Part shown: positions 595-54,400 of the stretch, in pieces
Position numbering within the stretch: position 1 is the stretch's first letter
How the letters are laid out: each line of letters begins with the position of its first letter
Source: Bugula neritina
Lineage: Eukaryota; Animalia; Bryozoa
Length of the DNA: 64,000 nucleotides
Direction of reading: 5' to 3'
Assembly (NCBI GenBank): GCA_964035545.1
Contig: OZ037770.1
Coordinates: 14,312,642 to 14,376,641 of the forward strand
Position numbers and translations under genes: made by a program
The notes under the pieces: model-generated
The model's database searches: none
Seen by the model: only the letters and a program-made list of their open reading frames with translations
What the model was told of the DNA's origin: nothing

Positions 595-3500
595 CTTTTT
601 AGCACCATGGGTGTCAATTTGAATGTACCAGTCTGGGTAAACGCCTTTTTTGATCAATTCCAGGTCAAGCGCATGGAACCGGCTGCGACCTGTTTCATCG
701 TAAGAGTCAGCAGTCAGCACCCCCAAGTTCTGCATACCTGAATGATAATATAGACACATGTCAACAGGTACTTGTATGATAATATAGACAAGTGTCAGCA
801 GGTACTTGTATGATAATATAGACATGTGTCAACAGGTACTTGTATAATCTGTAATCACATCTGCTAAACCGATGCTGCCAATAACACTCACATTTTCCAA
901 ATTCAACATCTTCAGCCCCAGAATCCTTTGCACAAAGACTTTCATTAGTTGCTCCTTTGAGGCCAAACCTTCTAAGTGCTTCTTTGCTGATTACATAACC
1001 ACCGCCTACAAAGTAGCCTCAGTGTGGAGATATAAATAGTCATACCACAACATGCGGCTTGCCCATAGCTCAGCCCTACAGAGTTCATACCAGAGATGAA
1101 TTTTATGAAAATCGCTTGGAGTAGCACAAAGTTGTTGGTCACTGAGTGCATTAGTTGGCGGTTTGGAGTTCGGACATGGTTGTCTATACAAATACTGCAC
1201 GCAGTGACCCCAAACCTTGTGCTGCATCTAGTGATTTTTGAAATTTATTTAATTTTGGCTCTAGGATGGACAAGAAAGTAGTTAGTTGAAGTTTTACAAG
1301 AAATAAAATAAAGATAACTGACAGCATATCTTGACTGTTGACCTAGGAATGACCTTGAGTACTAACCTCCGCTGTAATACCCGTTAGGTTTGGCAGAAGC
1401 GTTAAAGTGGTGACCATAATATACGGGTTCTTTCGGGTCTCTGTCAGCAAGAAAATATCTCAGATTTTCTAGGATTACAAACGTGTCATCATCAGCTTTC
1501 ATAAACCAATCAGCCTCATCGTAGTGGTTGTCGTAAATGTATTTGAACGCTTGCATAGTTTTAGCAGTCAAATGATCCCTTCCTTCGGCTACTTCCAGTC
1601 CTGGTAATCATAATGAATTATAACTAGAGATACAATTCATCTCTTGTAATACTGAGGTCGAGCAGGAACGGGGGGGGGGAAATTGAGAAAAAAAATTTCT
1701 GTGTTTTAGATTAGTAGCAAAATAAGTTATGTTCTCACAAGAACTTCAACCTGCGCTTCAAACAAAATTTATAAAAAGATTTAAAAAACTTAGACTATCT
1801 CAGTATTTCTGCTCCTAAATGAAAATATTATAATAGGAAACACAATTATATTACCTACATATACTTTTAATCACCACATCGCCATGCTAAGCATTATTCT
1901 AATAGATTTTTTATTTGATGCATGGGGACAGTGTCATTCGAATGAAACAACAACCATAGGTTAACACCGCAAACACTAATCCATTCATCGAGGATCCATT
2001 CAAATCATAGGAACGCAGTGAATCGCTTGTGAGTCAGAAGAATTGTTGAGTTATATGGAATACCTATGACAGGTGCAGGAAAGGTTGATGATTCGTTGCT
2101 GCTCACGTATAAGATCTTATTGCACCTGTGACCCCATGTGACATACGTGTGCAAAGCTTTAGAGGTCAAGGTTTTGGGTGATGTCATCACCCAGCATAAC
2201 ACTCGCACTTTCTGGAACAGCAAGGCGGCTATCCGCCGATCTTCGGCTAAAAAATAAAAACGCAAACACCACTTATATGTGCTCTGATTATTTAACGTAA
2301 ATCGCTATAAAGCTTGTATCAAATCTGATATTAACACTAGATAAAATTTGACAATCATCTTTGCAGGTAATCGTTTAAAATTTAAACTTTCAAATCAGCT
2401 TAGTAATTAAGCTGTTATTTGAAGCAGCTAAAAACTGCCTGCAGCAAACGTATTATTGCTAATTTAGTTTAGTAATACCATGGACTCTAATACTGTCCAG
2501 AAATTTCATAGGCATGAGCATAAAATCTGGTAAAGTACAAGGTTAATTAGAATTATATGTAGGTTGTAGTGTTAAGTTTACCCAGTATAGTCCCAATAGT
2601 GAAATGGCTAGCATGCCTGCTTGCAAACCAGTATCGGTTTATATCCCAGTGGTAGCAAAAGTTTTACATGGTCGCAAATTAGTTGTATTGTTACATAAAT
2701 ACTGCTATTAACGTACTACATATGTCATAAAGTCACAGCATTGGTAAATATGAGCACCAAATGGTATAAGTTGTGCTTCAAACACACTGACAACTATGTA
2801 AATGGAAATCGAAATTCATTTGCTGCAATCTTTGACGTTGCTACTTTTTTTATCCTAAAAAAATCTTATTCCGATTTTTCTGAGGCTTCTTATAAGAGAC
2901 TTAAAAGTAAATATGTTACACCTACCAATGTGATTTACAGTATGGTAAGGTAAATGGTGCTCTATTGTGGGCAGGGGTGGATAGGTGGGGGCTGCACCCC
3001 TGCTCAGCTCTCTGCATAGCTCCTCTATCGTTTCTAACTCGACTGTGCCGTTCACAACTTTTGGTGCTTTGATACTGGTTGTTTGAGCTTCAGGGTCATG
3101 GCCCTTGACCGTAGCAGATGGCGCCAACGTAGTGGAGGTTGTGGAGGTAGTGGAGGTTGTGGAAGAAGTTGAAGATGTAGAGGAAACCGTTGAGGAGTCG
3201 TATTCAAGTTTGACTTCAGTTTGAAAAGTGCTGGAGTTAGAAGAAAAGTGTCTTTTCACTAAATCTAAAAATTCAAAGCTGTTTTTTAGTGTTAACCAAT
3301 GTTTTACATAAATCAACCCGGTAAGTCTATAGGTATATGTAAACTCAGAATTTGTGACAATACTGTACACAATAGTCAATCATATCTTCCTTTCCATCAA
3401 GCTATCACTGTATAAACTTACATTGCCAGTGTTAATACACCATCATTAAAGCACAATTTTAGGTTATAAAGAGCTGCAACGGCCCAGGTATGTTTGACAA

Positions 3501-18096: not shown

Positions 18097-23790
<5,694 letters not shown>

Positions 23791-45225: not shown

Positions 45226-46654
45226 ATGCCAGCCGTAAGTTTATTACTGTCAATTATTATCATTTTATTAATATAAATAGTAGTGTTACCAAGTTGAATG
45301 TTTCACATATAGTGCTAATGGTCTTGAAAAATTAAAATAGGCTCTATACCAGTAGAAAACTTGAAAAATTTATATATAAATTGCTAAGCGAGTAGCAGCT
45401 AATGAAATTGAATTGTTATAGGAATAAAAAAGTAAAAAGACAATCGTCTGCCATCGGTGTTTCATTAGCACAGTAGCAGTTCTGTTTTCTGCTATAAAAT
45501 TTGCAATATTGAAAGTTATAGTTATTTGAGACTTGTAAGGTAGTAAAATTAAATGCAATCATAAAATTGGCAATTAATCAATGAAAATTTAGTTGCAATG
45601 AAAAGGTATGCCTAATGCCATATCAGTGTGTGCTTTTGTTACAGTTATACCAACACACCTAAATCGAGTTTATTGTTTCATAACTAGTTGAATTTCAATT
45701 TGAATGATTTAATATTTTGAAGTGTGAACAGTGTTTAATTCTCCACACTTGATGTTTTTTTGCACTGCCTTATTAAATTTCAGGTTCAGAAAAAATCCAA
45801 AGGCTCAGCCAAAGGAAAAACTAGTGGCAAGAAAAAATTGTCGCTAAAGTTTGTTATTGACTGCACCCATCCCGTTGAAGATGGCATCATTGATGTTGCA
45901 GACTTTGTAAGTGTTGATGGTTTTAAAATTTTTTTATAGTTTTTGTGGAATGATTACCTATTATCAGCGCCGGAAGGTTACTAACAAGTACAGTAGGGTG
46001 CCGTTCTGTCGAATATTTATTAATGACCACAATACTAGAAGAAATTTAAATGGCTGCCAACAAAAGTAAATTCATTTTTGAGAATGTACAACTAATTGCG
46101 CGGCTGATTAGGGTTATCTTCCCTAATCTGGCAGGTGCCAGGGCTCTCTTCCCTGATATCGCCATTTGCTACTTTTCTCTCTGCAGGAAAAGTTCCTCAA
46201 CCAACGAATCAAAGTAGAAGGAAAACTCAACAACATGGACAAGCGGGTTACCGTTGTCCGAGCCAAAAATAAGATCACAGTCAATTCTGAGATTGAGTTC
46301 TCTAAAAGGTAAATATAACCCAATGTAACAACTGTTGGGAGTTTTTGTGGAATGATTACCTATTATCAGCGCCGGAAGGTTACTAACAAGTACAGTAGGG
46401 TGCCGTTTTGTCGAATATTTACAAATGACCACAACTTCAGCATTCTAGTTTTGCCTGCATCACATCTTTACCAGCTGTAATATAACCATTTGTCTTCTTG
46501 TCTCTGCAGATACTTGAAGTATTTGACCAAGAAGTACCTGAAAAAGCACAACTTGAGAGATTGGCTGAGAGTTGTGGCTAATGCCAAAGACTCCTACGAG
46601 CTGAGATACTTCCAGATTAACAACGAGGAAGAGGAGGGTGACGGTGATGACTAA
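45226..46654 (+). CDS. RPL22: 60S ribosomal protein L22 (eL22)
   Basis: Exons 45226-45234, 45784-45906, 46187-46308 and 46510-46654: [60 protein letters not shown]. Confidence 0.97.
45943..46032 (+). ncRNA. Intronic box C/D-like snoRNA, copy 1
   Basis: Terminal stem TTGTGG/CCACAA, C box ATGATTA, D box ATGA; 87/90 identical to the intron-3 copy. Confidence 0.7.
46103..46164 (+). promoter_or_regulatory. Twin hairpins flanking a cryptic 3' splice site (candidate eL22 autoregulatory element)
   Basis: GATTAGGG-TTATCTT-CCCTAATC and CAGGG-CTCTCTT-CCCTG either side of CAG at 46132-46134. Confidence 0.6.
46345..46434 (+). ncRNA. Intronic box C/D-like snoRNA, copy 2
   Basis: Same boxes and stem as copy 1; D box about 80 nt upstream of the acceptor. 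Confidence 0.7.
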
Positions 46655-48668
46655 GTTACAGATTCAAAAGCAGTTGTGGATATTAAAGACCTTTTAATTG
46701 TATATTCTGTGTACAATAAAATATTCAGTTTGTCACCAACTATCTGTTGTATGCTTGAGTTCAAGTAATGTGCAAGTATAGGGGGAGGGGTACAGCCTAG
46801 TTCTGTAAATCAATTATTCTAATTGACACTGGTAAATAATGTAAAATTCTACTAGTCCAAATCATAAGTTTTTCATTTTGATAGCTTGGGCAAATTTTTA
46901 TTGGTGGCAGTTTTGGTCGCATGTGTGTTTCCTGGTGGTTTCCCTTGGGTGTCTCTGTTAGAGATGATGGCCAAATTAAGCTGATTGCAGATATTCCATG
47001 TCTGTTAACCTGCCTACAGTTGTAAGTCATCTTTGAGGGTGAAGTTGTCCTTGGCATATAAGTTCTATTTCAGTTGAATTAGTTGCAGGCATCCATAGTT
47101 ATTCAAGAGCGGACAACTTCGTATTCGGGAAAGCCAGTGGCACCGAGAGGACTTTGTTGGGTAGTTATCCTCTCTCTATTAACGTGCAGCTGTCATGGTG
47201 GCCCATGATTTGCGATGAACCTAGTCAGCAGAAATTCGTAATGACGCAGTTGGTAAAAGTTCAGTCTGTTGAATTTGCAGTTACTATTACAATGCAGGCA
47301 GTGTTATGCGCCTACACAATAAATGTTTTGAAAGGCAACTATTGACTTGAAGTATTATGTTAGTGCTTCAACATTTCAGCTTTGATGAATTGATTAGCTT
47401 GTTTGAAAGAAATTGCATTATGTGATTTAGTGTTTACATGGATTTGTTGCTAGGTTCAACTTAAAATGCATACATAATAAGTGTAGGCATCAACCAGTAC
47501 AAGGTTGTATATGTAATTGGCATCCAAACATTTAAATATAGTACAACTTGCTGATAACTCGACTACCAACAGCATAGGCATGGCCTAAATTTACAAAAAT
47601 GTTTCACAGTTTATAATAAATATTTACTACGCATAATAATTCAAGTTGTGGTAAAATATTATAGCACTTTTAGCTGGAAAATAGTCCTATTTAGTGTATT
47701 AGAATAGTACATAAAACTGAATAAGAAAATTGTGCATTCACTACACTTTATTTTGATGTAAATTGAGAATACCATTGGGATGAAAAACATACAGCATTTA
47801 AGTGTTAGTGCAACATCTGCTGGATGTAACAAGTTAAAATTATCATCATCTGGTTTTTGAAAACCCAAGAGACTGGTTTATTATTGATTTGCTGGGCCAA
47901 AACCGTCATAACATAAAGGCAACAATATCTATATAATTATTTTTTGTCATGAGTCTGTTAGTATTAGTAAACATATTGGAAATTTTCACTGCTGCAAGAT
48001 TTTGTAATATGACAATGGGGTATGTAAAAATTTTTCAACAGAGGCTCCATGACAATATGATAATTTTTATGGTATGGGTGACTTTTTGTATTTTAAGTTT
48101 CTTGTATTTACAATGAATATATATATATGCATTTAACAGGCTAGTTGAAAAAAGAACAGAACCGCACAACGTTGATAAACATAGACACTAAATTAGAATT
48201 CAGTACTCTAAAGTATCGAAGCTATCTAGTAAAAAAATGTGGCAAGATGCAAAATACTGCCGTACTTTCTAACGGCTGAAATATAACATAATAAACAGTA
48301 TAAGTCTTGTTGCTAATAGATTTGAAGAAAATGCAAACATTATTTGCTCCATTCTAGTATTATTGCGACTAATTGTTATGACCTGCTGAAATAACAATTC
48401 AAACCAAGATATCAGCCAATCATAGACGATAAAAGCATTTATGCAAATGAGATATTCATGAGGTCTTCCATATTTGGTTATAGCTTTTACCTTATATAGA
48501 TTGACAAGCGGTAATTTACGCACCCTTGCCAACTGTTGCGCGGTAACCAATGATCCTGCTCTCTTATAACCGCGCGTTCTCATTCAATGAGTCATTGCAT
48601 CCGTTGGGGAAGAAAGTAGAGGTCAGCCATTAATTTGTATTGAGATTTTATAACGCACTACAGACAAG

Positions 48669-50984
<2,316 letters not shown>

Positions 50985-51465: not shown

Positions 51466-54400
51466 TCAGCCATCTGGTGATTCCTGAGCTCTATCGGTGT
51501 GTTCCTGTGGTGGTAAAATATGTTGGTGTATAAACTCAATAGAAATATGTAATCATCCAGTTTATGACAACTAATTTTTGATTTACTTAACTCTTCCTAG
51601 TTATCTATATTAGCAGTTTAAAAGCTTTTTCTAACATTTCAGTCGACTCTCCAGATCCCACTATAAGTTGGGTGATTGATGGTGTTATGGGTGTTTGAAA
51701 AGTGATGATAGCAGCTCTACCAAAGTATTTTAGGGTTGCTGAATGCATGACACTAGTGCGGGGAGGGTGGCAAAGTTGTACAAAAAGGCGTGAATAAAAA
51801 AGAAAAAGTTATTTGAAATTATCAAAATTTGAAAGTTATAAATTTGAGACTAGAATAATTTGAAGGATTGTGCTATTGCTATTATCAAATTAGGCGAAAG
51901 GTAATATTGACTACGGTAGTTTTAAAGCAGTACTGTTGGCAGTACAATGAACGAACGACCCAATAGAATGGAGCATCTTCCATATTGAATCTGATGGCTG
52001 CTATAGAGATTACGACTAGAATATATAATGTAAGCCGTAAGGCAAGGTAGGCTAACCTCACTGAAAGCGCTATCCGATGTATGTCTGTCATCGTTGCTAA
52101 TCTGAGAGGAAAATTTCTTCTGCAGCACCAGATGCAACTCACGGATTTCCTTTTCTTTCTATAAGAAGAAAACAGTGCATAATGGGATAGATGAGTGGAC
52201 ATAACAAGGATGCAATGTCGGCAACTTAGCTTGTGATCTTAAAGTTAGAAAGTTAATTGTACATAAATACTAAACTAACGATGGCTAAATAGTAAAATTC
52301 ATGCAGAATTACGAGTTCATCGTAGCGAAAATAGTTAAGTATTGCCTATTATTAAATTACTAATGGGTGGTATATCTTAAGATCTCAAAGTCTCTAAATA
52401 GTAATTGTCTAGTTTTACTAGTCTGGAATGAAACATCCAATAGATATTAGATGATCCAACATGGCTGCCATGCACTTATTCAAGTCTTCTTTCTAGTTTA
52501 GTCTTACATTTGGTGAATATTTCCGACATTCTATCCATCATACTGCGTGACTTACATAAGTATTATTGTTAGGAGTGCTATTGGTTGCATCACAGGATTT
52601 TGCTGGTATAATGCAGTAGTATAGACTACGCTGAGAGAGGTACTAGCTTTCTCAAGATGTTAGCTAATCCTAGTAGAGCTACCACTGAGTTCCGCAGCTA
52701 TTTTGAGTATTGCCATTCAATAAATTGAAATTCAAACGATTCAGTAGAAAAAATTTGGACAAGGGAGGATAATAAAAATTATGATACTGGCAGTAAGAAA
52801 TGCAAAAAGCGGAGTTATCCACTCTATAAACAGAAAAGCAATGCTGGCTTATAATTACTAATACCTGCTGTACACACACCTGGGCTATTTGCTGCTTCAA
52901 CGTGTCGTTTCTTTCCTTGAGTTCATCCAGGCGTTTCTCGTTCTCCTGATGTATGAGGACTTGCTGGGTTTCGTGTTGGTCCATGTCAATTCTACGTCTG
53001 AGTATAGGAATCATCTGTATAACATCCGAAGAGGGAGTTATCTTTCCATTATAGTCCATAATTTATATGTCATACACAATTTGGAGTTGTGCTTACACTG
53101 GCTTTTATATAGCATTTTCAGTCATTTAAAAATATATGCTACGTATTATATGTTTTTGTGTATGTATCATAAAATAATATTATATAGCAAAACAACATAG
53201 TTGCTAATAATTATTACAATTTCATTATAACCTATTAAATTAGTAAAGGAGGCCAAATATTGATGATGCATTGTAGTAGTACGTGCTATTCAGTATAATA
53301 TTATTCTTTACAAAGCCATCAACACCTTCCATGTGTAAGACAGAGTATTGTGATATTGAAATTGTAATACATATAGACCTGCACATTAGACCTAGACTAT
53401 TCAGGAAATGTAATACTAACCTTAGGAATAAATATAAGACTGAGAGACAGGTAGCAGCTGAGAATGATGGCTACACTAATAAATCCGTAGAGGGCGTTGT
53501 GTTGGTAGGGTATGATGAGTGTGACAGGAACTGAGACTACACACAGCACCTGGGTAGAACAAGTATTGTATCTGCACACACAGTAATACAGTAGATATTG
53601 TATCTGCACACAGTAATACAGTAGATATTGTATCTGCACACACAGTAATACAGTAGATATTGTATCTGCACACGCACAAAGGATTGTGGGAAACTTACCA
53701 GGATGTTATATATCGCCATGGCAACAAACTTCAAGTCGTTTATGACGCGGATTTTTACATTTCGAGTTTCATACGCCAGAAAGAGGCCGGCCAATAGCAG
53801 AAGGCCCTTGTAACTATATATCACAGCTGCAAACACATCAAATATCTCCCGCAGTGAATAAAGAGAATACTGAAGATGCGTTTTGAAACACACACGATAT
53901 AAATAGCAATATAATAGATAATATATAAAACTAACAATGTTACGATTCCTCCTATAAAATGATACTAAACTGTTGAATTTTCGAAACCCGCACATTAGAT
54001 CAACATACCTATCCATTTGGTCATGTGATCACATGAGCAGTGCTCCAGTAGAGGTCGGTATTTGATGTCTCCGTCAGCCGGGTCAGTAGGTAACTGCGCG
54101 TCAAAAGTTTTTATACTTCGTTTCAGTGGATCCAGCGATTGCCATGCAGAAAGTATAGCTATGTCTATCACCAGCAGCGACAGCAATATGTAGTACGGCT
54201 CCGTTACAGGTATAATCTGTAGAATATACGGCTCTGTTACAGGTATAATCTGTAGAATATATGGCTCTGTTACAGGTATAATCTGTAGAATATATGGCTC
54301 TGTTACAGGTATAATCTGTAGAATATATGGCTCTGTTACAGGTATAATCTGTAGAATATACGGCTCTGTTACAAGTATAATCTACAGAACATATGGCTCT

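Follow-up and report, generated by a model that had tools for sequence, protein, structure and literature searches.

The 3' end of the second intron of the ribosomal protein gene RPL22 of the bryozoan Bugula neritina carries two similar hairpins, which are conserved and covary across animals. An alternative splice junction falls within the first of them, a few codons upstream of an in-frame stop codon in the opposite arm of the same stem. The element is most likely an autoregulatory switch through which eL22, the product of this single gene, would direct its own pre-mRNA into unproductive splicing; eL22 binding, the direction of the effect, branch-point use and NMD are ascribed to it here by analogy with the vertebrate paralog RPL22L1.

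The RPL22 gene of Bugula neritina

The window, i.e. the whole stretch of 64,000 nt that was analysed, contains a four-exon RPL22 gene on its plus strand, with the ATG at 45226 and the end of exon 1 at 45234. Intron 2 is in phase 0 and its donor GT is located at 45907. The remaining exons and the normal acceptor were placed as follows:

45784..45906, plus strand: exon 2 of 41 codons, from its translation and the RNA joints 45234>45784 and 45906>46187
46165..46186, plus strand: pyrimidine tract and normal acceptor CAG (AG 46185-46186), from the sequence and RNA joints
46187..46308, plus strand: exon 3 of 122 nt, from its translation, RNA joints and genome match
46510..46655, plus strand: coding part of exon 4, from its translation, with the KKYLKK RNA-binding motif intact (for the role of this motif in eL22 see PMC3750023)

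Searching the 216-Mb genome with the spliced RPL22 model exon by exon, we obtained the gene in the window as the sole match to exon 3, and querying for homologues with the exon-3 part of P0001 gave the self-match only. Since there is one RPL22 match in the genome, the regulator would be the gene's own product.

Hairpins at the 3' end of intron 2

The original prediction had placed two eL22-type hairpins at the end of intron 2, and both are present and predicted by RNAfold, each with the G-C closing pair and the 7-nt loop ending in U that had been described. The putative elements, from upstream to downstream, are:

46091..46096, plus strand: branch-like ACTAAT with its A at 46095, a candidate branch site 16 nt above the cryptic AG
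46106..46128, plus strand: hairpin 1, with an 8-bp stem and the loop TTATCTT, from folds, conservation and covariation
46110..46111, plus strand: cryptic 3' splice-site AG (TTAG/GG) with first exonic base 46112, from a contig joint in run X2
46124..46126, plus strand: in-frame premature stop TAA, codon five of the extension, at 182 nt before the exon 3/4 junction (46308)
46133..46134, plus strand: earlier-proposed acceptor AG (CAG/G), no use seen and position not conserved
46139..46155, plus strand: hairpin 2, with a 5-bp core and the loop CTCTCTT, from folds
46151..46157, plus strand: branch-like CCCTGAT with its A at 46156, a candidate branch site 31 nt above exon 3

Thus the cryptic acceptor occupies the 5' arm of hairpin 1 and the in-frame stop its 3' arm, and both branch-like words named earlier are found where they had been reported, the second in the 3' arm of hairpin 2. 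RNAfold predicts an extension of hairpin 2 to 46129-46164, and its AG (46140-46141), if used, also meets an in-frame stop, TGA 46154-46156. The end of the intron is indeed richer in GC than the sequence before it (0.50 in 46100-46199 vs about 0.31-0.36 upstream). Compared with shuffled sequences, the fold of 46085-46200 has a z-score of -1.9 and that of 46100-46165 one of -3.15, the latter inflated because its boundaries were set around the hairpins. Searching the 216-Mb genome for the double motif gave this single occurrence, with none in the reversed control, and two motif copies did not arise in any of 20,000 shuffled versions of the intron end. Among the curated families of Rfam, no match to the element was obtained at or near any gathering threshold.

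Splice junctions in RNA

Four RNA assemblies (including runs X2 and X4) were aligned to the RPL22 gene, with contig depth as a rough measure of abundance and with rare forms dropped by assembly. One contig in run X2 joins exon 2 to 46112 at a depth of 735 vs 18556 for the normal joint (about 4%). This canonical GT-AG joint is the only alternative one in the four assemblies, and its AG is the first past the branch-like A at 46095. The individual of run X2 diverges from the window by a few percent; the contig was reported as 45905>46112 plus one C, and this C, which recurs in the normal joint, is a synonymous variant at 45906. Among the listed variants of X2 and X4, those near the element are located in the loop of hairpin 2 (46146 C>T) and in the pyrimidine tract (46174).

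The extended isoform gains 75 nt in frame and reads GYLP followed by the stop. In NMD, a stop codon is generally recognised as premature when an exon junction follows it by more than 50-55 nt; judged by its sequence, the 46112 isoform has the standard NMD layout and would be degraded accordingly in this scheme. The original prediction had instead favoured the CAG/G at 46134. That site exists and its arithmetic is correct, as an exon starting at 46135 would add 52 nt, shift the frame and end at TAA 46270-46272, with the junction at 46308 following after 36 nt. Nevertheless, no 45906->46135 joint was seen in the four RNA runs, and four bases including the AG are missing in a close relative (L003). 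The message would be rendered unproductive not by a frameshift but by the stop on the 3' side of the hairpin 1 stem; since this stop lies 182 nt above the junction, the earlier reservation about NMD no longer applies. The core of the original prediction, namely eL22-type hairpins, branch-site masking, unproductive diversion and resemblance to RPL22L1, finds good support in conservation across animals, covariation and the alternative junction, whereas its acceptor, frameshift and stop distance have to be replaced.

Intron retention was observed as well. In run X2 intron 2 is retained in a contig of depth 84 and intron 1 at about 6, with no retention of intron 3; in run X4 retained intron 2 reaches 572 vs 5833 for the spliced form, with intron 1 at 1172.

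Conservation among animals

In L003, whose exon 3 protein is 92% identical, both hairpins are nearly unchanged and the adjoining upstream intron is poorly alignable; the loops are altered, and TAA is replaced by TAG, which is still a stop and still paired. Several protein matches to exon 3 proved to derive from reading frames that stay open across intron 2, and the hairpins recur in the DNA of these matches. Furthermore, a scan of metagenome contigs with exon 3, blind to the motif, yielded 80 loci. Where these loci have an intron at the corresponding position, AGGG-N7(6-9)-CCCT hairpins were found in arrays within its final 135 nt in close kin of the window (L008-L012), in coral-like (L023-L030), bivalve-like (L014) and worm-type loci (L032-L069) and in others left unplaced, these labels being approximate as they derive from exon-3 similarity or our own reading. 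The unit YAG/GG-N7-CCC-TRR is present in RPL22 intron 2 in three copies in amphioxus, two in Crassostrea virginica, one in Exaiptasia and three in the calcareous sponge Sycon ciliatum. It was also found in 17 further loci analysed, the copy number ranging from 1-3 or more.

The phase-0 intron between F and E is common to skate RPL22 and all invertebrate loci. The unit was not found in skate RPL22 (11-kb locus), in Oscarella, in termite- and wasp-like loci, in one nematode-like locus (L083), in L076 or in algal-type loci, and the third introns of the same loci contained the motif in 0/13 cases. The 86-nt intron 2 of Oscarella lobularis (L090:467-552) has two acceptor-like TTAGGG words but lacks CCCT arms, and may represent an array that has decayed or been remodelled. 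In four anthozoan loci (L023, L027, L030, L091) one canonical unit follows a variant hairpin whose arm reads AGGGA, at about 60-100 nt above exon 3.

Design of the repeat unit

The loops of 44 units were compared; 38 are 7 nt long, all 38 of these end in TT, and positions 1-4 vary. In 29 aligned units, 93.9% of the cells are paired, vs 34-60% in slid controls. Because the units were chosen by their AGGG/CCCT core, the four inner pairs are uninformative for covariation; across the five outer pairs two-sided changes were counted in 29 cells. None of 500 shuffles attained these values, which are overestimates owing to the choice by the core and to the inclusion of related loci and tandem copies, although the changes span phyla. 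The unit motif fits the published eL22 consensus.

The stop codon is the pairing partner of the YTA of the acceptor. Since intron 2 is in phase 0, the acceptor is YAG/GG and the loop has 7 nt, CCC-TAA, CCC-TAG or CCC-TGA is brought into frame. Reading into the first unit meets a stop within five codons in 23/23 loci, 147-238 nt upstream of where exon 3 ends. Unlike this early stop, the frame of the complete insertion varies between 0, 1 and 2 across loci, and the frameshift was rejected as a selected feature on these grounds. Branch-like YTRAY words lie 17-22 nt before the end of the AG of the first unit in 14/23 loci, and in 10/23, including Sycon and oyster, a YTRAY is located 24-32 nt above exon 3, within the 3' arm of the unit nearest to that exon. 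As this placement is conserved, it supports masking of the branch site. In single-unit species (Exaiptasia, corals), acceptor and branch site stand on one hairpin.

Proposed mechanism and alternatives

In the proposed mechanism, the repeat unit is a hairpin YAGGG-N5-UU-CCCURR, the 5' arm of which would serve as a 3' splice site and the 3' arm of which would supply the CCC-stop, with the 3' arm of the last unit doubling as the branch site for the normal acceptor. At low eL22 levels, the last hairpin would open, the branch site at 46156 would be used and full-length mRNA would be made. Free eL22 would bind the loops, keep the stems closed and conceal the branch site at 46156, upon which the spliceosome would take the upstream branch site at 46095 and the first AG after it (46111). 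The resulting cryptic isoform, a 48-codon open reading frame with its stop 182 nt above the next junction, would be removed by NMD, and part of the RPL22 pre-mRNA may remain unspliced. As the cryptic AG is situated inside a stem, it must be unwound after branching, or else hairpin 1 is not the clamped one.

The retained intron 2 in runs X2 and X4 would also be expected if eL22 binding mainly blocked splicing of this intron, as in yeast RPL22B, with the 46112 junction as a side product, and yeast offers a precedent (PMC4838235, PMC13630204). We consider this unlikely, since in X2 the cryptic junction (735) exceeds the retained form (84), the signal in X4 is not specific, with intron 1 also retained, and mere retention would make the conserved geometry of acceptor plus stop needless. 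As for the 46134 acceptor with its frameshift and stop at 46270-46272, a CAG between the hairpins recurs in some relatives (L008-L012, L089, L092), and a rare form could have dropped out of the assembled contigs, but the joint is unseen in the very four runs in which 46112 appears, the site is deleted in L003 and it is only the second AG after the upstream branch site, so that this acceptor is very improbable as the regulated one.

The switch could also be real and be read by a factor other than eL22, e.g. of the UAGGG-binding hnRNP A1 type, or the structure alone could act as a fixed attenuator. The site of hnRNP A1, a protein that binds single strands, resembles UUAGGG; in addition, eL22 is assigned to these hairpins by inference, and SRSF4 was reported to affect the human RPL22L1 site. 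However, UAGGG is locked in a covarying stem, contrary to the single-strand preference of hnRNP A1, the invariant loop UU beside the closing G-C matches eL22, and the double motif is unique to RPL22 in the genome, all of which makes another reader quite unlikely. That the hairpins represent a separate small RNA (H/ACA- or miRNA-like) or relics of telomere repeats is the least probable reading and highly so, even though TTAGGG/CCCTAA occurs in the arms and the intron already hosts a C/D-like RNA: the arms are inverted rather than tandem and vary (CTAGGG/CCCTAG, CCAGGG/CCCTGA) with pairing kept, the copy number varies, most units have stems of only 5-12 bp, Rfam gave no match and the position is tied to the acceptor.

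Other features of the introns and the window

Two box C/D-like RNAs accompany the gene:

45943..46031, plus strand: box C/D-like RNA in intron 2, a neighbour outside the switch that ends 80 nt above the cryptic AG
46345-46433: second copy in intron 3, part of a 95-nt repeat with 97% identity to the intron-2 copy

They have variant boxes (ATGATTA and ATGA) and a terminal stem, occur in just two copies in the genome and gave no Rfam match. Their core is conserved in L002/L003 and L008-L012 and not in other animals. The distance to the acceptor is 76 nt for the intron-3 copy, and 80 nt (cryptic) or 155 nt (normal) for the intron-2 copy; given this spacing, unproductive splicing might suit the release of the intron-2 RNA. 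In L002 (730-860) and L003 (1-120, 770-903), the C/D-like RNA with its flanks is found in intron 2 and again just past the RPL22 stop codon, which is either a tandem duplication or an assembly artefact.

Elsewhere in the window, near-identical ORFs with Ser/Thr-rich repeats of differing length at 2855-3379 and 21496-22038 (minus strand) point to a local duplication, 50343-50984 (plus strand) is a beta-tubulin exon and 53537-54016 (minus strand) an exon of a class C GPCR (7tm_3, GABA-B-like). Moreover, six small contigs of the assembly (C147, C202, C306, C220, C190, C244) contain intronless cathepsin matches with in-frame TAA/TAG, which suggests ciliate contamination. The genome is rich in matches to innexins and Cys-loop receptors, and the cathepsin loci that were read include none with a silicatein-type active site, a gene content that speaks against a sponge.

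Comparison with known systems

The closest parallel is intron 2 of human RPL22L1, where an alternative acceptor under two stem-loops is bound and promoted by RPL22 and its product stabilised by NMD inhibition (10.1101/2024.08.15.608201; PMC12035866; 10.1101/2023.12.29.573614); of the two NMD transcripts found to be most abundant in zebrafish, one stems from rpl22l1 (PMC7354994). The Bugula element shares with this exon 3A switch the gene family, the intron number and stem-loops over an upstream alternative acceptor, the vertebrate isoform being unproductive and NMD-sensitive. Compared by eye, the RPL22L1 intron-2 primer (10.1101/2024.08.15.608201) starts with GGG, a 7-nt loop ending in TT and CCCTAG, like the unit. 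Unlike the RPL22L1 switch, the Bugula gene is single-copy, so that control would be exerted by its own product; its stop is immediate and within the stem, in contrast to the frameshifted 64-aa product described for the human variant; and the invertebrate array comprises 1 to 3 or more copies, whereas the papers cover vertebrates only. Homology of the two elements is unproven, since a frameshift product of 64 aa is what has been reported for the human isoform and the sequence comparison covers one printed primer, no RPL22L1 sequence having occurred among 256 proteins retrieved.

In yeast, eL22 acts on structures in the introns of its own genes RPL22A/B and lowers productive splicing (PMC4838235, PMC5755908, PMC13630204), as it would in Bugula if the predicted binding holds. 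The yeast structure is, however, a long alternative stem-loop ensemble that inhibits splicing in a different intron, without short tandem hairpins. No long inhibitory/permissive stem-loop with retention of the yeast type was found here: the Bugula hairpins are short, and the cryptic isoform exceeds the retained one in X2. The yeast switch and the animal element are likely independent. L10ARE of RPL10A/rpl-1 (PMC4937301) is likewise a deeply conserved intronic element, with which the protein switches its own splice site to an NMD isoform, but it uses alternative 5' splice sites and is a single 39-nt element. RPL22 is not named among the worm AS-NMD genes in the main text of that paper, in line with the absence of the motif from the nematode-like L083.

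The units share the G-C closing pair and the 3' loop U with the eL22 stem-loop consensus known from EBER1, SELEX, MDM4 intron 6 and the zebrafish rpl22l1 exon 2 hairpin (PMC3750023), and differ from it in being far tighter: the top of the stem is invariably AGGG/CCCU, and most loops have 7 nt and end in (C/A)UU. The splice and stop signals that overlap the units may account for some of this constraint.

Evolution and significance

The array is carried by amphioxus RPL22, while skate RPL22 is without it. Autoregulation by eL22 was probably ancestral in animals and kept by RPL22L1. We think it rather likely that the common ancestor of sponges, cnidarians and bilaterians autoregulated RPL22 by "poison hairpins", i.e. 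inverted repeats that combine decoy acceptor, stop, branch site and eL22 loop. After duplication, RPL22L1 would have kept the array and vertebrate RPL22 lost it, which would leave the one-way repression of RPL22L1 by RPL22 that is studied in cancer; insects, nematodes and Oscarella would have lost or changed it separately. A literature search covering few subscription journals found no description of the element in single-copy invertebrate RPL22, of its conservation from sponge to chordate, of its absence from a vertebrate RPL22 or of the overlap of acceptor, stop and branch site. Thus the type of mechanism is already known from RPL22L1, and the invertebrate RPL22 element, which we could not find described, appears new.

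With acceptor, stop and branch site all carried by the arms of a single hairpin, the design is compact and can be tested directly in minigenes, and the natural alignment yields a candidate eL22 site defined much more narrowly than by the loose rule of G-C plus U now applied in choosing targets such as MDM4. Takei et al. (PMC4937301) proposed that cross-regulation of paralogs may derive from duplicated autoregulated genes, and RPL22/RPL22L1 offers a concrete case for testing this origin. If the proposed history is true, the element would be among the very few intronic RNA elements conserved across the animal kingdom, and it would reveal the origin of the RPL22/RPL22L1 switch that is relevant to MSI-high cancers and nucleolar stress.
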